From Eutreptiella sp. 'Long Island Sound 2002' (lineage: Eukaryota; Protista; Euglenida), in the NCBI GenBank assembly GCA_964036045.1, contig OZ038378.1, forward strand, positions 21,018,001-21,082,000: a DNA stretch of 64,000 bases, given 5' to 3'. Under the pieces are notes generated by a model. That model saw nothing but the letters and a program-made list of their open reading frames with translations. It was not told the DNA's origin and did not search any database. The position numbers were made by a program, and so were the translations under genes. Each line of letters opens with the position of its first letter. Position 1 is the first letter of the stretch. This document shows, piece after piece, positions 11,201 to 38,632 of this stretch.

Positions 11201-14200
11201 GGACCGTTTTGCGGACCGATCAAGCGACTTTCCAGTCCCGCACTCCCTCTTGCCGCTGGGCTGTGGGCTGGAACAGCGGCTGCGTGGCCAACAGGGCCGG
11301 CGGTGGGTGTCCAGCCCTCTCCTGTGGTCCTTAATGCATCCTGGGCCGAGGGCTGCGGGGCCCAGCAGGGCGCCAGCCTCTGTGCGTATCACTGCCCGTT
11401 GCCGCATACTCATCCGTGACCTGTTGCCAGGCACCGACCCCCCTTCATTTTGTTGGGTACGCACGGTCTTTTATTGGCTGATGAGCATCTGTCTTACGTG
11501 CTGCTGGCGCGTGCATCGCACTGCCATGAGACAGCCTTCCAATCGGGGCTGCGTGACTGGATCCCCCCCCCCCCCAACCCCTGGAAAGGAAGCTCACTGT
11601 ACCCCAGTTCCCGACTGACTGCCCCACATCTGACCTGGGCCCCAAATTCAGAAAGGAAGCTACAATGGGCTGCTCCACATCAGCACGACGAGCGGGTGAA
11701 GCAAAGCCATCGCGTGCTGGCTGTTGCGTAGTGTGGTGGACACCCTGCCCCTGGGGGGGGAGGGTCAGCGGCCAAACGAAAGTTGGTGTACCTTGAATCG
11801 GCCTCAAATTTCTGGGCTCTTCAATAAATTTCGTTTTTTCTCTGAGGAAAGGTTTTCCGATGTGGGTGAAGGCTGGGTCGGCCGGGCTGGCAAGGGCGGA
11901 GGCCTGTGCTTAGTGGCTGGTTGATACTATACCCGGGGGGGGGGGGGGGTCAGAGGCCAGAAAAAATTTTGTGTACCTAAAATTGACCTCCCGGTTCGGG
12001 CCCCTTTGCTAAATTTCATTTTTTTCCTGAGGAAAAATTTTCTGATTTGGGTGGGTGCGTGGGTGGATCAGCCAAAATCCTGGGGGGTCCAATCCCCCCC
12101 CCCCCGTATCACTAAGCAAAGGCCTGCCAGGGCCCTAGACTACACGGAGACGGAGGGGGGCAGGGGGTCACGAAGCAATAGCCTGATCACGTGCTTTTGC
12201 TTTTGAATGCTTTTTGTGGGGCAGCGGCACCCCACTGCCTCGCGCTCTATCGCGCAGCGGGGGATTTCCTGGACGGAAGGACGGCACGAATCCAGGCGGA
12301 TGTGTTCGCTGGCAACGCTTTGTTTCATTTTTGTGGCTCCCACCCTGACTGAGACTGAGCCCCCCCCCCCCCCCCTGGGCCCTCTTTGGAGGTCCGATCA
12401 CTCTGCAACGGGTTGGGGTCGGGGAAAAGGATGTCTGCACATTTTCCTCTACCATGTAACTCCCCCCTCTTTGATGTGCAGCGAAGCGTGCCCCAGTGCC
12501 ACCCCAGACCGCACCCCCGCTGATATGAGCTCCGAGGACATCAGCCCCGATCTCCAAAAACTAACATCAGGTGTGCCTGCTGTTGTGCTGTGTCTGTGCC
12601 CCTCACGAGCATGGCGTTGTACCTGGTCGGAATTACCGAAAGTCTGGGGACACTGAAGGTTACGGGCACAGGCATGCCTTGACTCAGGAAAACAATTTGA
12701 GCAAAGCGAAGCGGTCGGACAGAAGTCACCTCGAAGATAGGGTGCTAGCCAAGCGCAGCTGTCAACACCATGCATGCCCCTTTTTGGCGGGGTATTGCAC
12801 GTAGCATGCCTCTTCTGTGGTGCACAGTACAAGGTGCCTTTGGAATCAGCCAGCCAGTGGAATGGATGTGCCATGCTCTGCGCATTGAGTGCCGCAGTCT
12901 CTCCTTTGTGGAGCGCGATGGTGTCAACAGTCTTCCATGTGGACCCCAAACCAATGCGCCCTGGGTTCTATCTCTGGGGACCTGAGCTTGGCATCCCTAT
13001 GGGCCCTGGCGATGAGGACTTTGCCATCTTCAGGCCGGAATGGATTTGCTGAAAAGTCGACTTTGTCCGGCAACCCCTGATGACCCCTGAGAACCCTGGG
13101 CCACGCTTGGGTAATCAGCTGGCAACAATGGCAGTTCTTATAGACCCATGGGGAGCCATGCAGCACCGATTAAGCCCACCTATTGGTGCCCACCCATATG
13201 GACCAATTGCAGGGTTTTGGGTTGTATCTCTGGGTACCTGAGATCTGTCCCCCTGTAGGGCCCCACCAGTGAGGGTTTTGCTGCTGCAGGCCGTCATGGG
13301 TTGGCTGAAATTCGATGTTTTCTGGCAACCCCCAACAACCCCTGGGGCCAGGCTTGGGTCACCATTTGGTTACAATGGCAGGACATACAAAGCTAGGCCC
13401 ACCTGTGGTGTGCATTTGCCCTGACAAGAACCGTTTTGGGCTGTTTTGGGCAGGGGGCTCTCCAGTGGACTGGTGCACAAATTGCTCATGCAGGTTTTCA
13501 CCCTGAAGAAAAATTGAAAATTCCCAGACTAATTTCGTTTGGTATGGTGACCACCCAGAAGGATGAATATCACATCTACAGCATGCTTTAGACCTTCTTG
13601 CTATGTTTTTCACATCATTTGTCCATTGTGTGCTTGGGTGGGTGTGTTGCGGCTTCCTAAGGGCCGGTACACCTGCTCATGCTGTTTTCAACCCTGAACA
13701 GCTCAAAAATATAAAAAATTCCAAGAGCGATTTGTTTGATATTGTGACCATCCATGGTGATCAAAGATCTCATGTACGGCGTGCTTTCGTCCTTCTTTGT
13801 GTGCATTTCATTTCATTGGGCCAGTGGGTACTGCCCAAGGGCCTCGTCCACCACCTGCTCATGCTTTTATTTCACCTGGAACAGCTTCAAAAAAAAAGGG
13901 CAGAATGAGGCAACTGTGAGCAATGGGACAGACATTCCACTCTCACCCACACAATTGCCCCCCCCCCCCCCCACCCACCCACCCAGACCCCCACCACACA
14001 GACATACTTCCCACTTCCCACCCACACCACAGCCTTTATGGAAAACCCTGACTTCTCCCAGAACTGACCCCGACCAACAAAGGCAGGTCACACAAACGAC
14101 ATGGCAGAGGACACCGGTTGCAATTCATGTGGACCACACTGCTTTTGTGGACCCCACCCCCAAATGAGGCCAGAAAGTGGGTTGGTTGGTGGCTATGTTG

Positions 14201-28543: not shown

Positions 28544-29496
28544 ATGGAAGGGGGCCCCCGCCGCCTCGGGGCCCAACGGGGCGGCAGGCGCGGGGGGGCA
28601 GCAAGTGCCCGTGGAGGGGACGGTTGGGGGTCGGCCCTCCAGAAGATGGAGAGACTACACACGCAAGACGCTCTGCACAGTGGGCAGACGTTTGTCCTGC
28701 TGGGATGGGAAGAATCGTCATTGGGGACATACCAGTGTCACCTGCGCAGGCTGGCGGCGGTCGAGCGGCGGTTCCCATGTGATGCCAAGGAGCGGGTCCT
28801 GGAGCAGACCATATTGGAGTGCGCCCGATTGGGGAAGTCGGAGAGCACAATCAAGGGGATCATCAGCGCAGCCATTATGGCGACAGAGGTGCGGCTGGTT
28901 GACGCGTGCATCCCGACCACCATCTGGACATCCGTCAAGGCGGCGAAGAAGACAAGGAACGCGGCAAAAGAGCGTATCTGGGGATCCCCGATCATGCTGC
29001 TACACATGGCGGCAAGAACCAGCAGCTTGGAGGACTGGGCAGTGGTCGGGCTGGCCATCGTCTTGTTCCAGCTCTTCCTGCGCGTCGGAGAGGCAGTCAC
29101 CCTACAAACTTGGGCAGTCGTGGATGACGCGGTGCGGTTCTTCGACTCCAAGACGAGGCAGGACTGGCAACAGAGGTCACTCACGCCGCTTACAAGGGAG
29201 TGGCTGCAGTGGCTCCAGCGCCACTTCCCAGAGCCGGCGGCGGAAGGAAGACGGCCGTGGACGACACAGCAGCCGGAAAAAGGCATGCAACGCCTCCTCG
29301 TCGGATCCCCGTTTGAGGGTGCCCGCTGGCACGCGTGGCGCAGAGCCGGAGCTCGGGCTATGTGGACGGCTGGGCCACAATCCGGCAGGTCGCCGTGTGG
29401 GGCCGCTGGGCGCGTGACTCCACCGCGCGGTGGTACGCGCATCCGACCGAAACGCAGCCCGTGCAAGCGGAGGATTTCTGGCCGCGGCCCCCCCGA
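28544..29496 (+). pseudogene. Tyrosine recombinase of YR element 1, 5' part (continues at 36171-36652)
   Basis: FLRVGEA (catalytic R), WHAWRRAG (HxxR), then a 1-bp frameshift near 29372 to WGRWARDSTARWY (W/Y motifs). Split by the DNA transposon. Confidence 0.88.
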
Positions 29497-29796
29497 CTTA
29501 GGCGGCTCTATACGCACGTAGACTTCGTTGCTAAAAGGCACGATTCATGGCGATTTCAACATCCGTTTTTTGCACCTAAAAAAAGCATATCATTTTTTCG
29601 GCCAACTCCACGTGTATTTTCATCGTGGGATACAACAACCTCGCCTTTTCTTGCTTCCAGAGGTGCACATATACACCCCCAATTCCGGGCTGAAAATTGT
29701 ATGATTTAAAATTTTTGGGCACTGCAGTGCCCAAAAATTTGAAATGGCTTTTTTCAGTGGGTTCTCCAGTACACCTCTGTAGTCATCTCCGCAGGT

Positions 29797-32736
29797 GATG
29801 TCCTACTGCAGCAGCAGGCATCAAAATTTGGCATACCCGTTATCAATGGGTCATCGCACCGCGGTGTTATACTCGGAAGGCCACGTATAATGTACCTTGC
29901 CCAATCACTTTCATTCCTGTCCAAATGTGCACTTGAAAATGGACTTCCAGTACTTTTGGGCACTGCAGTGTCCAAAAAATTTAAAACTCCGCATTTCACT
30001 CCTATTGGTTCCCATTGCGTAACACCTGACAAAGGACGTATGAATCATTGGACGTTGGTACTCATCCTCTGCTCATTGGAAATATACTGCCGGTTGTCTG
30101 ACTGCCACCTTGGAGTGTACCCAGGCTTTGGAACGTTCCACGTCCATTGGGAGATACATTGTTTGGATCTTCGCTAGCTGCTTTTGGTCTATGCCGCATC
30201 AGGTTTGTTTTGTGATAGTGTCTCTGTTTTCTTTGTCCCCTTACCTTTGCTGCCTGCGAACAGGACTGTTGTCCATGGATGCGGCTCCCTTCCGGCAGTT
30301 CCTTAGTTCGAAGGTATATGCTTCAAAGGAGGATCTATCTGAGGCTGTGGGTAGGGATAAGGGTGCCGATGAGTTTTGTATGTGGGTGTTAGATCTCCGG
30401 TCGGAGTGGAGAAGTAGGCGGTCCGTTGGTGAATACATCCAACAAAGGGACAGGCGGACCGTTAATTGTCTGCCGGACCAATGGTTCCGTGTTGCTGAGC
30501 AAGAGATTTTTAATATATGGTCTGTTCTACACAAGAGGTGTCGTCCACGTGCCAAGAGTGCTGTAGGTGTCCAACCCAAGAGTCGTGTGCAACGTAGGTG
30601 TTTGGCTCACATGGGTCAATGTTCTTACAATGTACCCTCCTTTGCTGTTCAAGGAGCAACTGCGTGCACCAATCTTTGGCAGACCTTGGAAGGTAAACCC
30701 GCTGTCCTATGGTTCGATAATTTTTATAGACGTAACTTCCGGCCAGTGCCTGGTAATGAGAACCGGTCCCTTAATTGTACAGCCGGTGCTATCATACTCT
30801 TGAAACGACCTGTTGACGTTATGCCGTCTTTTCCTAGCCTCTCGGTTTTGCGGCAGAGGATTGGGTACACTGCAGACTTGTTGGTGCAGAGCCATAAAAA
30901 CTTCATTGATGGCTTGCAAGGGTTGATGGACGACCCCATCCGCCTTCAACATGTTCGTTGTCCCTTGGACGTACGACGGGCTAATGTTACCAGCCCAGCT
31001 TGGACCCCCTTTTTTCTCACAGACCTAACCGTGTCCGCTACCCCCGACCTTGTCTCTATTATTCACGGTCTCCAGGAGGTGCAGTAGCACACACAGCACC
31101 GTCTTCCACTGTTGGTCGACGAGAATATTCACTACCGTGTCCTTAAGCTCGTTTACAGCATCAGCTATGCTCGGTACAACGTGCCCCTGTTCATTACACG
31201 TACCCCGGTAGTGTATGGCACATGGCACCCATATAAATATTGTGTAACCCTGTGCTACAGAAGATTCTTCCCTTTATTTACCTATTTTTCCTATGGTTCA
31301 CTCAATTTGGGCACTGCAGTGCCCAACTTTCCGAAACTCATCTATATGGAGCGTATGATTCTGGTGCTCTTGCACTTGGCCCATAAGTGGCGCCAACCTT
31401 TGGAACAGAAGTTACAGACTCTAAGGGGTTTGCACCGACCGGGTAACGCTAATCACAGCACACTTCTTACACAGGTGCAAGGGTTGGTAACGCTGCTGTA
31501 TGGTTACATTCCAGCCTTGTTTATTATTGGGTCGCAAGTGAGGGATTGTCATTGGTCTGCACAGGGAGAGCAGCACGCTGCAGGGCCATTGCTGAGCCGT
31601 TGCCTACACGTCCTTATGAGGCTCACCCTAGGTTATGAGGACAAGGTTGAATATGTGCGCACCATTGTTGTTGCTAGGCTGTTGTGGTCCCAATGGTTTG
31701 CCCGCTTACCTGGGGTGGCACACAGTGAGGAACCGTGTGAGGCCCTGTTAAGCCGTGTTGTGTACTTAATGGCACAACACCCTGGGAACTGTACGTTGCA
31801 ACAGGTGCATGACCTGTTTATACTCACTCCCGTTGCAGACCAGACCCCAAAGGACCTGCAGTACGTTAATGTTCCCAAGGGACTGCCACAACTGTTTGAT
31901 CGTCGTTTCACCAGATTGATGGCGCGATTTGATGTTGGTGTTATACCCCCCCTGGTCTGGTCCAGTCAGAAGTCGAGTATCGTGCAAGACAGGTGGGATC
32001 CTGCCAAGACGGTGCTCACTGCAGAGCATTACCGAGATCTATGTGCCAAGACATTGCAGACACTTGTTAAACCTGTTAAAGTTGATGCTGACGTGATGAC
32101 AGAGCTGGGTAGACACGTGCCACAACGTCCTCCAGGTGATATGGACACAACAGTAGCACAGGCACAGGACATGTTACGCGCATGTAATACACCAGACCGG
32201 TACAAGCGACGCCGGCCAGCACGCGCTTTTGCGCAAAGGGACCCCGCCCGGATACCCGCCTCCCCCAATGTTGATGGCGACAGTGACAGTGATGAGGACC
32301 CCCCCCCCCCCCGCTGGTTGTTGTGTTTTGTAAGCTGAGCTGAACTGTGCACAGTGAATCCGAGACACCAATTGAACCTGATATGGATGTGCTGCAGTGC
32401 AGCAGAACACTGCACTGATTGTGGTGATGACCATGCGCCTGTGACACGGGGGCGTATGCGAGCCCAGTATCCGTTGCATCATGGCCCCGCTGGTGGGGCA
32501 GCCGGAGATCCTGACCTGAGGGCTGCTGATTTTGTGGGTGATGATGGATGGGACCCGGACCCCCCCCCCCTCCAAAAGCAGTGTCTGTTCACAGTGATGA
32601 TTCCGATGCCCCCGTGGCTGTCCTTTCGGAGTTGAATGAGTTTGACCCTCGATTTTTACCAGGTGCATCCGACTGTGATGCTATTTCTGCCATCTGTGTT
32701 CAATCGTCGAGCGCTGCCAGTAGTCATCAACATTAG
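29797..32736 (+). pseudogene. DDE (RNase H-fold) transposase-like gene with premature stops
   Basis: ORFs 30110-31087, 31112-32338 and 32354-32635 share one frame, separated by a single TAG (31085) and a single TGA (32336). Motifs WFDN (about 30710), VDEN (about 31115), GTWH (about 31217), HSEEPCEA (about 31721). A GT-AG intron at 30203-30263 links to an upstream frame (TAG at 30175). Cys/His-rich C-terminus. The 5' limit is approximate. Confidence 0.7.
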
Positions 32737-32817
32737 AAGCCTGTAAATCAACAATTTGCAGCCCTGTGGCCTTTTGTAGTGTGCCGTGTGACCCTTTGTT
32801 AGCCCCTTTGCTAAGGT

Positions 32818-35490
32818 ATGCCTTCGGATACCGAACTGCCGGAAGGGGATGAGCAGCAGACCGCATCGCAAGCCGTTCACACAGCAGAGAAGACACGGGC
32901 GCAGTCGGGGCAGGCTCCAGTGAAGCGGACGGGGACAGACCGGGCAACGGAAACATTCCGGACAACGTGGATCTAAAAGGAACTGGTCAAGATACAGCTG
33001 ACCAAGATCAAGTTTGACACTGACCTCACGCGTGGGCAGACCAGAGAGAGGGACGAGGACTCATTACTATCGCGGATCGCAAGCCCGAGGACAAATCCAC
33101 CCTGCCGGCCTATCTCAAACATTCTCATATGGCGAAACGAAGGTACACTACCATCTTGTCACACACGCGTTGTAATTTTCACACATTCTGGTCGTTTGGG
33201 CACTGCAGTGCCCATCTCGCTGATATCTCCCATCTCCCATCCCCCTGTGGTGCATTTTTATATCAGCTGAAATTCCCTACTGCTTGGGCGGGGCTCATAT
33301 CCTGACGGCACTCCAAAGACTTCACCGAGAATACTGTGCGAACTCACGGGCGCTGCCGGACTGGTTACAACACGTCTACTGCGAGGAGATCAGACACGAC
33401 TGTCCTGTTGACATCAGAGGGATTATTGGAGGCGATCACAACGCGGTACAACACTCAGTGACCAAGCTGAGTATGGGACAAGTGGCCGCTCGAATTTGGA
33501 CTGAAGTGCAGAAGGGCAAAGCGAAAGAGATGCTGCTGGTGCCTCTGCGGAAGTGTGGCCGGCTGGGTGAGAAAACATCTGTGGTATGACGGATGCACGA
33601 TGAGACCCCCGTTGTCAGTCCTTTGCGTACCTGTGGCCTGTCCAACACTGCATGCCTGCCAGGACTCAATCTGGAAGAATTGGAGACCGCTGGTTTCATT
33701 ACTGCAGATATCTGGTGGCCGCGTGGCTGAGTTTATTGACACCTTTGAGAAGACTGCCGGTGAAGGTATTGTGTCCTCTGAGTACCTGTTTTTGTCGTCT
33801 TCTGGTGTTCATGGGAACTGCAGTGCCCAAATTCGATGCGACCCTAATTTTGGCACTGCAGTGCTCAACCCCTACACTCTGCGGCCGTTGACGGGACTGC
33901 ATGGCGACCAGATGGATGAAATACTGCTGTACATGGCTGGAGATGGGGCCAAGATCGCAGGACTACATGCCAAGGCCAGACTGTTGAAGCGGGACCGCCT
34001 GTGGGAGATGCTGTACCTTCACCCGGACAACACGCTCATCCATCCTTCTCGACGTATGTTCATGGGGCGGCAGGGTATGGCGCGATCGCTGTTGACCCCC
34101 CCCCCCCCGACACACGACGTAAGGCTGTTTCGATCCCAGTGGTACCAGTGGTCACCTGTTCTAACAGTGAACGTGCATGAAATGCAAAGAGTCCGCAAAC
34201 TGCTTGCAAAGTCGCCGAGGGCCGCCAAATTGTCACTGGGGAAATGGACCTGGAGTGCCGAAAATCCCTTACCAAGCAGGGACACCACCCAGAAAGCACC
34301 GCTGTGGCAGGATGAGGAATGGGCTGACCTGAGGATTGCGCTGGCGAGGCCTGTCAAGGAAACTGCAGTGACAGCGACTGATGGGGAGAAATCAACAACT
34401 GTTTGGCTCAACAAGCCGCAGGATGGGACTGAAGCAACTGGAGCTCGGGCAGAGGCAATTGCGTTGGTTCCTGGCAAGGCTATCCCGTATACGATTGCAT
34501 TGAGGGAGTACAAAGCGGTATGCATTCGTTAGGCATAAAAATGGGATCGCTTTCGCATTGCTGGTCACTTTAGGCACTGCAGTGCCCATCTGTAATGAAA
34601 TGTGCTTTTGACACCAGGTCTTCATTGAGTGTACGAAGGAACAAATGGACGATATCCATCCGCTGGTGCTGAAGGTTGCCGGGAAGTTGATACCGGTGGC
34701 TATTGGTGGAATGGCGGCCGACGTTAAGTTCCTGGTTAATCAGTTGCGCGACTCTGAGGAGTGTGGAGGCTGGCAGTATGTTATGACCTCTTTTTTTGAT
34801 CAGGCAGTCGGTCACCCGACCTATCGGTTCGAGGAGAGGACTATTTGCTTCTGTGTCCCAGACAAGTTTAGGGTGAAGGTCCCGAATATTTTCATTTGCG
34901 ATCAGGGTGCATACGGCAGCACCATTGGTCTGGCAGCGGCTGGTTGGCTCCTGCGTGTGCTTGGTATTGTTCCCCGACGCGACAGACAGTCCGAGGATGA
35001 AGTGTGGCTCCTGCTTTTGACAGCATCGGCTGTATTGCCAGCACAGCTCCTGTCCTGCCTTCGTGCGTCCCCCTGTGTGGCAGCTTGTTTCACTGGGCGC
35101 CAGGGTTTGTTTAACGAGTTCTGTGAACAGCTAGCGGCGTATGTGCAGGAGATGGACTGTGTCTACTTGGTTAACTGGGACGCTTGGATGCCAAGGATTA
35201 GGGACTGTATGCCAGTTGTGGTGCAGCGGCCTGGGGAAGGGGAAGCTGAGGAGGGGGGGGACGATGTGGAGGAAGAGGAGGATGACGAGATCGTGCTGGT
35301 CGGAGGTGGTGACAGCAAGAAGAGGGGCACCCCCAGCAAGAAGAAGCCGTCCCCCGACGACAGTGGGGATGGGGTTGATGATCCCCCCAAAAGGCCAGCC
35401 AAAAAGGCCAAGGACAGTACCCCCCTCAATATGTTTCACGCCAAAGTAGGTCAGGCCAAGGGTAAGAAGGCTCCACCAAAGAAGAAGTAG
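32818..35490 (+). CDS. Second transposon gene: five-exon protein of unknown function (about 750 aa, one premature TAA), acidic/Lys-rich C-terminus
   Basis: Phase-compatible GT-AG introns 33143-33266, 33584-33662 and 34518-34617. A probable intron at 33766-33894 has an apparently mutated acceptor but leaves the frame open either way. TAA at 32974. Ends EEEEDDE...KKKAPPKKK. Confidence 0.65.
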
Positions 35491-36170
35491 ACTGCGTTGT
35501 GCGGTTGGCACTGCCTGTGTCCATGTCAGTAGTTTTTTCGCCTCGATTTGCACACTGTCGCGCGTCCTGTTCTATGCAGGTGTGAGACTGGTGCCCTTTT
35601 TCATGTTTTGGTAATTTTGGGCGCTGCAGTGCCCAAGTTCAGCGACTCGCCATTTTTTTACCCCTGTTGCGCCATTTCTTTTGCAGGCATTGTTGCCGTC
35701 ATTTATTATTGCATTGGTTGCACTGGCGGCGCCTCCGTTGTTTGTCGGCACCACTGGTGGTGCAGTATTTGTCACGCTTCGCATACAATCACAGTGACTG
35801 GGTCAGCAGACGCGGTAACAAAAAGCAAACCAGAGTTTTGCATGTGTTTGCCTGTCGTCCTCCTTGCTTCATTTTTTAGGTTGCATTTCACGGTATGGTT
35901 TGAAATGCAGCAGCGGATGATTTGGAAGAATTGGATTTTTCTTCGGATGGACACTGCAGTGCCCAAATTTGAAGGGGATACATGACTTTTGACTGGCACA
36001 TGTTGTAACCCCTACACACAGCCATTTTGGATAATTCACAGGTTTTTGGGGGTGTTCCCTGCAAAGCACAATTGTGCAATTTTTCAAAGTGTTTTTTCAG
36101 CCCCCGTTTTGGGGTGGTACCCATTTGGGACCTGTGGCAATTTTGCTACGTGCGTATAGAGCCGCCTAAG

Positions 36171-36652
36171 CCCGAGAGGGAGCTGGAGGCAGGTGGCGCA
36201 GCCGCACGACGTCCCTACGACTCGAGCAGCTCTGGCCGTCTGGGATACGACAGCAGTGGAAGCACAGAAAGGAGCATGTGGCCTTTGGGCCCTCAAGGAC
36301 CATGCCCGGGGCCGACAGGCACGCTGGAAACTCGACGGCGGCCCAGGGCCGGGCGGGGAGCAAACTGCGACCAAAGGGACAGCTCGCCAAGCACAGGCAG
36401 GCGCCCGGCAACGGGGGCGGCAGCTCGACAGGGGCGCGACAAGTTCGGGGCAGTGGGCAGCAAGTGCTGGCCTCCTCGACCGAGTCGACTCCGTCCGACT
36501 GCCGACCCACAGAGGAAGCCCCCACCCCCTTGCGCCTGGTCCCTAAGTTCAAAAGAGTACGCGCTGAGGAGGCCCGAGCACAGGGGGAGTTCAAGCGAGT
36601 GCGGAGAGCCACCGGCAGCGTGTCCTACTCGTCTTACTCCTCCACCACTTAG
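36171..36652 (+). pseudogene. C-terminal extension of the YR ORF of element 1, after the transposon
   Basis: In frame with 29335-29496 once the element and one TSD are removed. Confidence 0.75.
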
Positions 36653-36845
36653 TGGAGAGCTGTGGCTGTGCGTAGGCGGGTTTGGCGCTTTGTTGGCGGT
36701 ACTGGTGCGACTGGTTTCGCGGGTGTGGTGGGTTGCGGTGGTATGCGCGTCGTACGTGGCCTGCGTGTGTCGTGTCGGGGCGGGGGTAACGTCTGATGCT
36801 ACCGTTGGGGCGGGGCGGCCCTCCAAGGCCAGGTTCCGAGAGGCC

Positions 36846-38632
36846 ATGTATCAGCTTTCGCTGCGTTTTGCGCAAAAGTGGGGTGTAGAGCAGGGACGCG
36901 CGTACAAAGCGTTGGATGTGTTCAGGAGAGAGGTGTTCCAGTTGAGTGAGGATTTGAGGGAAGACAGGCCACTGCTAACATGGATGCACCTGTGCGAGGC
37001 CATGGTCATGGAAGGGCTTAGGGAACTGCTGGACGGCATTTACCCCGCCGTGCCGGAAGGTGAGGTGACTCCTGAGATAGCACAAAAAGGGATAGGATCC
37101 GTGGGTGCGGTTCCGCTGCCGGAGTGGCTGTGGCAGATCTATGTCGGTCCGCGTCAGGAGTTTTTGCTCTCGTTTGCTGAGGAGGCACGGAAGGTGCGGG
37201 GATCCACGGCTGACATGCTCAGCGCCATTGCAAGGACAGGGGCACTGCAGCAACTGTCGAGGCAGGAGGCGGATGCCTTGGGCATTCCGTGGTCGCCTAC
37301 GGCGGCTGCCTTCACCATCCCCAAGAATGAGACCAAGGCGCGGCTTATCTTGCACGGGGTGCGCGCCAACCAGAGGCAGTGGGAGGGCGGGTACAAGGTG
37401 CCGCGTGTCAGCCTGCCTCAGGTAGAGTCTTTAGCGGAGGTTTTTTCGCAGGGGCTGCGTGGCTGGGGGGCCAACATTGACGTAACAAATTGTTACTGGT
37501 CCATACTGCTGCCAAAGGGGAAGTGCCACCTTTTTCGTGTGGGGGGGGGGAGGAGTGCATGTGGGTTTTTAAGACGCTGCCGTTTGGTTGGAGTTCCAGT
37601 CCACTACTGTGTCAGCGACTGCTGGCACAGTTGACGGGGAAGGTGGGGCTGGAGGTGGCAGGGGCGGTGCTGCGGCTCATGCACTACCCGGATGATTTTC
37701 TGGTGTTCGGCGACTCCGAGGCCGCCGTCGCCACAAAGCTGGCGGAGTTCAAGGAAGTTCTGGCAAACGCTGGCTTCCTCATCAGTGACAAGTCGTCCAG
37801 TCGGCCGGAGAAGGAGCTAGTCTTTTTGGGCAAGCATGTCGACTTTGGGCGGGGGGTGCTTTTGAACACCAGGCACACGTTGGAAGATGCCCTGAGTAGG
37901 TACGTGCTGATGGCATCCAGGCCGGTTACGCGAAAGTCCGTCCAGCGGGTGGTGGGGAAGTTGATCTGGGCCTGCAGGCCGTCGCATTGGTCAAACCTAT
38001 TTCTGGCGGGGCCCATTGCGCACGTGCAGTGGGGCGCAAAATGGATGCCGCGCCCGCCCACTAACCTTCTGCGGTCGCTGTCGGGTGCGTTGTGGTTTGC
38101 TGGAAGGGGCTGGTGGCCTCCTACGTCACCCCCCCCCCCCCCGCCCCCAAAGGGGCTGTGCCCGCAGGTGTACTCCGACGCGGCGCGGGACGGAAATAGT
38201 GGCAGGCTAGGTATGTGCTCATCGGCTGGAGCACACCACTCCGTGCGTGTGCCGCTGCAGAACCAGCAGGTGCTAGAATTTCGAGGGGCGGCTGCGGCCG
38301 TAAAATCGGTGGTGGGACGGAAACTCCCGTGGGCTACGCTGCATGTGGACAACCAAGGGGTGCTCTGGGGCCTGAGAACAGGGAAAATGGGAATTGGGCT
38401 GCGGGAGCAGCGTCGCTGTGTTCGACAAGTAATGTATGCTCTGGCAAAGGGGGGGACTTCGGTACACCTTTCGTATGTACCCGGGGCCATCATGCCGGCG
38501 GACTACCTGTCTGGGGTCCGCAGCAATTTTTTTGGTGACATGAGCATGGCACTAGGGTCTGCCATCGACCAAATGGCAGATTTGTTACCTGTTTGCACTC
38601 AGACAGAATGTTGGGGAGTCTTGCGGTTCTGA
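36846..38632 (+). pseudogene. Reverse transcriptase-RNase H of YR element 1 (frameshift in a G10 run)
   Basis: FTIPK..KARLI, IDVTNCYW, LPFGWSSSP, YPDD, FLG; RNase H YSDA/EFRG/VDN/PADYLS. The frame switches at the G-run 37541-37550. Confidence 0.9.

Follow-up and report, generated by a model that had tools for sequence, protein, structure and literature searches.

We analyzed a 64-kb stretch of DNA from Eutreptiella sp. 'Long Island Sound 2002' (contig OZ038378.1, positions 21,018,001 to 21,082,000), the whole of which is called the window below. At 29497-36170 (6,674 bp) it contains a copy of a transposon with two genes between inverted termini, inserted into a retroelement. Its features are listed here in window coordinates; other loci are denoted by L and a number.

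29492..29496 (no strand): left target site duplication (TSD), CCCGA, repeated exactly at 36171-36175
29497..29521 (+): left terminal inverted repeat (TIR), CTTAGGCGGCTCTATACGCACGTAG, exact; the same TIR is found at the ends of five other copies
30275..32338 (+): gene 1, DDE transposase, one exon with an in-frame TAG, based on the open reading frame (ORF) and homologue comparison
32818..35490 (+): gene 2, spliced accessory gene, based on colinear homology with L003, L007, L008, L009, and L010
~32818-33142, 33267-33493+, 33660-33765, 33864-34064, 34176-34526, and 34615-35490 (+): exon blocks of gene 2, based on conservation
36146..36170 (-): right TIR, exact inverted match to the left TIR
36171..36175 (no strand): right TSD, CCCGA, the pentamer flanking the right end
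28544..37634 (+): host ORF of a tyrosine-recombinase retroelement, interrupted by the insertion, based on in-silico excision

The 25-bp TIR CTTAGGCGGCTCTATACGCACGTAG was present at 29497-29521 (+) and 36146-36170 (-), with 25 of 25 positions complementary, and a search of the 64 kb allowing up to 3 mismatches returned these two sites alone, while 0 were expected (100 shuffles). An earlier reading of the bare sequence (hereafter the initial annotation) had reported exact TIRs starting with CTTAGG, a CCCGA duplication, and a transposase-like gene in tandem with a spliced second gene. All of this was borne out: CCCGA stands at both flanks, and both genes lie on the + strand, at 30275-32338 and 32818-35490. 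Since removal of the element and one CCCGA in silico reopened a single frame of 803 codons starting at 28544, we concluded that the transposon interrupts coding sequence of a tyrosine-recombinase retroelement. The initial annotation had described the recombinase frame as cleanly restored, which was loosely worded: the 803-codon frame does reopen, but the C-terminal motif of the recombinase is found in a neighboring frame (ORF 29335-29709).

Both genes of the window copy are broken, with the TIRs still perfect. The transposase gene reads TAG at 31085-31087, where an intact copy reads CAG, and gene 2 reads TAA at 32974-32976, where L001 reads AAA; the copy is dead. A 24-bp gap near 32008 and a deviating C-terminal tail, beside a poly-C tract, further distinguish its transposase from that of other copies. 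In our view, the stretch is probably (roughly 80%) a now inactive copy of a DNA transposon of the cut-and-paste type, which has two genes, is young, and is present in many copies; the transposon belongs to an unnamed, superfamily-level DDE lineage, "unnamed" meaning as far as the Pfam, PDB, fold, TSD, and terminus tests and the searchable literature reach.

Some minor features were also seen at the locus. A 176-bp segment between two poly-C tracts (32309-32484) has no counterpart in L001 and L002 and alters the C-terminal tail of the transposase. In the host retroelement (28544-29709 and 36176-37634), HxxR-like and GxWxSxxxxxxY-like motifs just before the insertion are found in two different frames, pointing to a frameshift in this retroelement. 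An Rfam search of the window gave no match.

The transposase and its placement among DDE enzymes

An intact version of the transposase was found as P0001, a single ORF of 696 amino acids that is 96% identical to the window protein and whose 90% cluster comprises 288 sequences. A profile built from ten homologues matched 1,602 clusters at E ≤ 1e-3 and 451 at E ≤ 1e-30 among 1.84 billion cluster representatives. All twenty of the matched representatives that were looked up came from environmental contigs of ENA, JGI, or Logan and were labeled at most as 'hypothetical protein'. About twenty superfamilies of eukaryotic cut-and-paste transposons are distinguished, and additions to them are rare. 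The present family comprises more than 1,600 clusters (50% identity), nearly all of them on unannotated environmental contigs, and is without a Pfam profile, so that current annotation pipelines will miss or mislabel it.

A Pfam search, which the initial annotation had proposed as a check, matched the transposase to no model: neither the ORF pieces of the window nor ten homologues gave a match, and the same was true for 55 diverse full-length members at E ≤ 1 (the model content of the library was not verified). No PDB chain was matched in sequence and profile searches with the transposase. The structure predicted by AlphaFold (AF2) had a predicted local distance difference test (pLDDT) score of 77.9 and a predicted template modeling (pTM) score of 0.74. 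The model begins with beta1 (143-153, containing D148), beta2, a helical excursion, beta3, and an alpha helix, and continues with beta4 (279-281, followed by D282), an alpha helix, beta5, an all-helical insertion (~332-483), and a helix starting from E485/E486. As modeled, the order of strands and helices is that of a DDE enzyme which combines an RNase H-like fold with an insertion domain. Among 55 homologues, D148, D232, D282, E359, E485, E486, and E489 were at least 95% conserved, whereas W317-H318, G419, and R423 were invariant. The motifs WFDN, VDEN, GTWH, and SEEPCEA, picked out by the initial annotation, correspond to the invariant or near-invariant D148, D282, W317-H318, and E485/E486/E489, and the predicted catalytic residues are D148, D282, and E485/486 (P0001 numbering), i.e. 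a conserved acidic triad in an RNase H-like fold. Foldseek found no match in PDB at E ≤ 1e-3, and usable fold scores were obtained from the VIA aligner only, which gave the following pairs of values:

P element transposase: 9.8 and 9.5; 280-290
Hermes: 9.0-7.1; ~270-286
Tn5: 7.9; 202
RAG1: 6.7-5.5; ~275-300
ISCth4: 6.5; 226
Transib: 6.3; 259
Retroviral integrase cores: ~5-6; ~130-140

These values are modest relative to the background stated for the aligner, and DDE enzymes head both match lists. We consider the fold assignment safe because the match list is homogeneous and the invariant acidic residues are suitably placed.

The transposase might be a very divergent member of the hAT (cf. hAT5) or P superfamily instead of representing a separate one, which we consider unlikely. 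The invariant W-H follows soon after the second Asp, at the position of a C/DxxH-type motif that Yuan and Wessler reportedly described in hAT and P in 2011. Against such membership, none of the 55 members matched the hAT, BED, THAP, or P-element families of Pfam at E ≤ 1, the Hermes and P chains of PDB showed no detectable sequence similarity, and the structural alignments carried only 8-9% sequence identity. No THAP domain, BED finger, or C-terminal hAT dimerization domain was found, and the family does not show the combination of THAP domain, 7-8-bp TSD, and GTP-binding insertion domain that characterizes the P superfamily. The elements start with CTTAG, as opposed to YARNG in hAT and CATG in P, and duplicate 5 bp compared with 7-8 bp in P and 8 bp in most hAT. 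They also have an obligatory second gene, which is foreign to both superfamilies, and their internal repeats are perfect palindromes. The TSD alone cannot set the family apart from hAT, because the hAT5 group likewise makes 5-bp TSDs (PMC12730594); the initial annotation had overlooked this group when it called 5-bp TSDs typical of Transib/RAG-like elements.

Kinship with Transib/RAG1, which the initial annotation had read from the motifs, would place the family in the EnSpm/Transib/RAG1 (CMCT) clade. The 5-bp TSD, shared with Transib/RAG1, fits the 2-5 bp of this clade, and a DDE core with an insertion domain is common to both. The clade is, however, defined by the zinc motifs C(2)C and H(3-4)H and by CA..TG termini (PMC12730594), none of which we found. 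Between D282 and E485, the frequent residues of this kind are H318 (100%), C425 (69%), and H475 (58%), with no paired motif. Instead of 5'-CA..TG-3' (CAC in Transib), two lineages have CTTAG...CTAAG at their ends, and a third has ATCTATGG. The structural scores were also below those for P and hAT. We regard this assignment as very improbable.

We give even less credence to membership in DUF6589 or among the KDZ elements (Kyakuja/Dileera/Zisupton); the sole argument for it is the motif impression of the initial annotation. KDZ elements have TSDs of 7-8 bp and Kyakuja lacks TIRs (PMC12730594), as against a 5-bp TSD here. The 55 members matched no such profile at E ≤ 1, and no CxC zinc domain was seen. 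Elsewhere among superfamilies, the TSD is 4 bp in Sola, 3 bp in Zator, 8 bp in Novosib, TTAA in Kolobok, 6-7 bp in Dada, 6 bp in IS3EU, 3-4 bp in Academ, 8-9 bp in Merlin, and 8-10 bp in MuDR, while Ginger2, with a TSD of 4-5 bp, has an integrase-type core without a large insertion. The supposition that the element fits no familiar superfamily thus held for every described superfamily tested, and the family is most suitably regarded as an unnamed lineage of superfamily rank among the insertion-domain DDE enzymes (P, hAT, Transib/RAG).

Other copies, lineages, and target duplication

Near-identical transposases were located on large contigs of the ENA assembly ERZ25074135, from which five loci of the window family were retrieved. 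All five have the same TIR (0-3 mismatches) and a 5-bp duplication. The same assembly contains a second lineage (L003 and L011), with a transposase 34% identical and exact 23-bp TIRs, CTTAGCCCACGCAAACTGCACCC. The TSDs were as follows:

Window copy (copy under study): CCCGA
L001 (full-length copy): CATGT
L002 (full-length copy): TCGTT
L004: AGTGA/AGTGG, a single mismatch
L005 (internal-deletion derivative, 3.4 kb): CATGA
L006 (internal-deletion derivative, 4.3 kb): ACTTT
L003 (second lineage): ATGCC
L011 (second lineage): TGTGT

Tabulation of TSD lengths across copies, as suggested in the initial annotation, therefore gave 5 bp in all eight elements of the two lineages (seven perfect, one at 4/5), and the termini CTTAG...CTAAG are common to both. 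A third lineage, L008, from an unrelated metagenome and about 26% identical, has 23-bp TIRs starting ATCTATGG and is flanked by the pentamers GTAAG/GTATG (4/5 match). Since a 5-bp TSD is seen in the elements of two lineages and in the pentamers of L008, it is a property of the family; TIRs of 25 or 23 bp combined with a fixed TSD length are those of a class II TIR transposon. No target-site consensus was apparent among the compared insertions, and neither the TIR nor the palindrome (see below) of the second lineage was found in the window. The family is the second DDE lineage, independent of the first, in which the TSD measures 5 bp, and it offers a handle on the relation of active-site spacing to TSD length.

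The family looks recently active. The three full-length copies compared (window, L001, and L002) are 96.7-98.0% identical, and the deletion derivatives L005 and L006 retain both TIRs and the TSD. Among four copies, variable sites at codon positions 1/2/3 numbered 36/31/42 in the transposase and 29/36/63 in the gene 2 exons. Variation amounted to 5-7% in most coding blocks and 8.9% in exon block 2, compared with 18.5% in intron 1 and 8-10% in subterminal DNA. Together, these figures are a weak hint of selection on master copies.

At the loci of other copies, the transposon is frequently located within or adjoining other repeats, and L003 1-3810, L003 15861-21095, and L004 4078-6644 are dense in Ty3/gypsy-like and reverse transcriptase-bearing elements. 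The L003 element has an extra internal copy of its own right end (11448-11470), directly after a truncated transposase ORF and followed by a fragment with a weak integrase (rve) match (11701-11943). Since the 5-bp TSD fits the outer ends alone, its interior is either rearranged or carries a nested insertion.

Gene 2 and the lineage-specific palindromes

Gene 2 was found to be homologous and colinear in six lineages, in tandem with the transposase gene in four and divergently upstream of it in two, so that it is retained at 24-38% transposase identity with varying orientation. The divergent arrangement, with the partner gene (-) on the strand opposite to the transposase, is that of L009 (1887-5045) and L010 (652-3579), two distant lineages which come from other metagenomes. 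The sole exactly placed intron is intron 1 (33143-33266, GT-AG, phase 1), whose junction was confirmed by the L009 homologue, in which the N-terminal domain has no intron. Searches of Pfam and NCBIfam with gene 2 gave no match, and a homologue search with the L003 gene 2 ORF returned same-genome copies only. The N-terminal ~170 amino acids show a strand-helix pattern ending in (D/G)G..(Y/F)V..GQH. A 12-row profile of this region gave seven matches in PDB, all of them sulfiredoxins (Srx; best E 0.019), in an alignment that spans the G-Q-H motif, and the single L009 sequence gave weak matches with sulfiredoxins on top (E 0.34). When the remaining ~500 amino acids were compared with PDB, using the 513-residue intronless L010 ORF and a C-terminal profile, only noise was obtained; there is therefore no sign of 2-oxoglutarate (2OG) oxygenase or methyltransferase domains. 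The tail is acidic and then lysine-rich.

The element also contains a repeated palindrome, TGGGCACTGCAGTGCCCA. Allowing 2 mismatches at most, the window has nine copies of it, every one within the element (0.01 expected). These copies, to which no strand is assigned, are:

29716-29733 and 29957-29974: left subterminal, 219 and 460 bp from the left end
31308..31325: within the transposase ORF, encoding a conserved GTAVP
33197-33214: in intron 1 of gene 2
33812-33829 and 33850-33867: between blocks 3 and 4 of gene 2
34571-34588: between blocks 5 and 6 of gene 2
35618-35635 and 35948-35965: right subterminal, 535 and 205 bp from the right end

The offsets are constant over six copies (219 and 460 bp on the left, ~205 and ~535 bp on the right), with one further palindrome in the transposase ORF and the others located between exon blocks of gene 2, and no palindrome of the window family was found outside the elements, either in the flanks of the five other loci or in the rest of the window. 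At the position of the palindrome within the transposase, the homologue P0018 (38% identity) likewise reads GTAVP. In the five lineages checked, the palindromes had five different sequences, each 16-22 bp long and present in 5-10 copies; those of the other lineages are:

L003/L011: AGTGCGCGAGGCCTCGCGCACT
L008: GCGCGCCTAGGCGCGC-like
L009: TCGTAACAGTTACGA-like
L010: CAACGGGATCGATCCCGTTG

Such a private, co-evolving palindrome is the site that would be expected for a dimeric protein encoded by the element, the putative binder.

These observations can be combined into a mechanism. The transposase would bind the CTTAG-type ends and excise the element through a metal site formed by D148, D282, and E485-486; the 3' ends would then be joined to the target strands at positions offset by 5 bp, and this stagger, once repaired, would yield the 5-bp duplication. 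Because the N-terminus of gene 2 is ParB/Srx-like and no zinc-finger DNA-binding domain is recognizable in the transposase, the lineage-specific palindromes are most likely recognized by the gene 2 protein or by the helical N-terminus of the transposase. The putative sites lie between the exons and, toward each end, at distances of ~210 and 460-540 bp from it; a protein bound to them would serve to mark the element's own DNA or to assemble it. A more far-reaching reading, at clearly less than even odds, is that the family is an undescribed superfamily of eukaryotic DDE transposons, widespread in uncultured protists, whose transposition would depend on a ParB/Srx-like partner recognizing private parS-like palindromes scattered through the element. 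If true, a self-recognition module would be co-evolving with each lineage. With a single transposase, a single ParB-like partner, and a single private palindrome, the family offers a compact system in which to examine the recent proposal that transposons encode proteins recognizing their own DNA.

Several points weigh against the picture of an unnamed superfamily with a ParB-like partner. An already named superfamily that lacks a Pfam model may accommodate the family, and the CTTAG termini are not universal, L008 ending in ATCTATGG. The likeness of the gene 2 N-terminus to ParB/sulfiredoxin is borderline by sequence: the Arg of the ParB/Srx motif G-x-H-R is not conserved, and within the gene 2 motif only H is invariant, since the window family has A in place of Q and one copy lacks the G before it. 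Furthermore, the AF2 model of this domain reached a pLDDT of only 37.

A functional analogy is offered by PIF/Harbinger, in which a DDE transposase without an evident DNA-binding domain is accompanied by a second protein, putatively DNA-binding and required for transposition, and gene order and orientation vary among lineages. This likeness is one of analogy only, since the transposase is unrelated, the TSD is 3 bp, and the partner is of the Myb/SANT or MADF type instead of ParB/Srx-like. ParB-like accessory proteins have been described together with inverted-repeat arrays in the red alga Bostrychia, as part of giant Plavaka elements (PAG3), with relatives in Chondrus (bioRxiv 10.1101/2025.02.11.637652), and in Sola1-1_Ec32 of Ectocarpus (PMC12477816). 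In these algae, the ParB-like domains are fused to a 2OG oxygenase or DNA methyltransferase, and the proteins were proposed to bind, and perhaps modify, their own transposon (bioRxiv 10.1101/2025.02.11.637652; PMC12477816). Since such proteins beside inverted-repeat arrays were published in 2025, the idea of a partner plus palindromes is not new. The algal elements share with ours an accessory protein whose ParB-like domain is N-terminal and inverted-repeat arrays in the same element, but they belong to EnSpm/Plavaka, Mutator, or Sola1, whereas the transposase family described here is unnamed, and in gene 2 no match was obtained for the ~500 residues that follow the ParB-like domain. Three things are still new here: the family of the transposase, the way in which its ends and TSD are combined, and a ParB-like partner in which no enzymatic domain is recognizable.

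Two possible relations of the palindromes to splicing were considered. The copy within the transposase ORF does not mark an intron, which was ruled out by the intact copy being one ORF and by distant homologues keeping the segment. A tie to the non-conventional introns of euglenids was also considered; intron 1 is an ordinary GT-AG intron. In the copy at 33850-33867, the central CTGCAG gives an in-phase AG between blocks 3 and 4 of gene 2, and this candidate 3' splice site could define a 96-nt phase-1 intron at 33766-33861.

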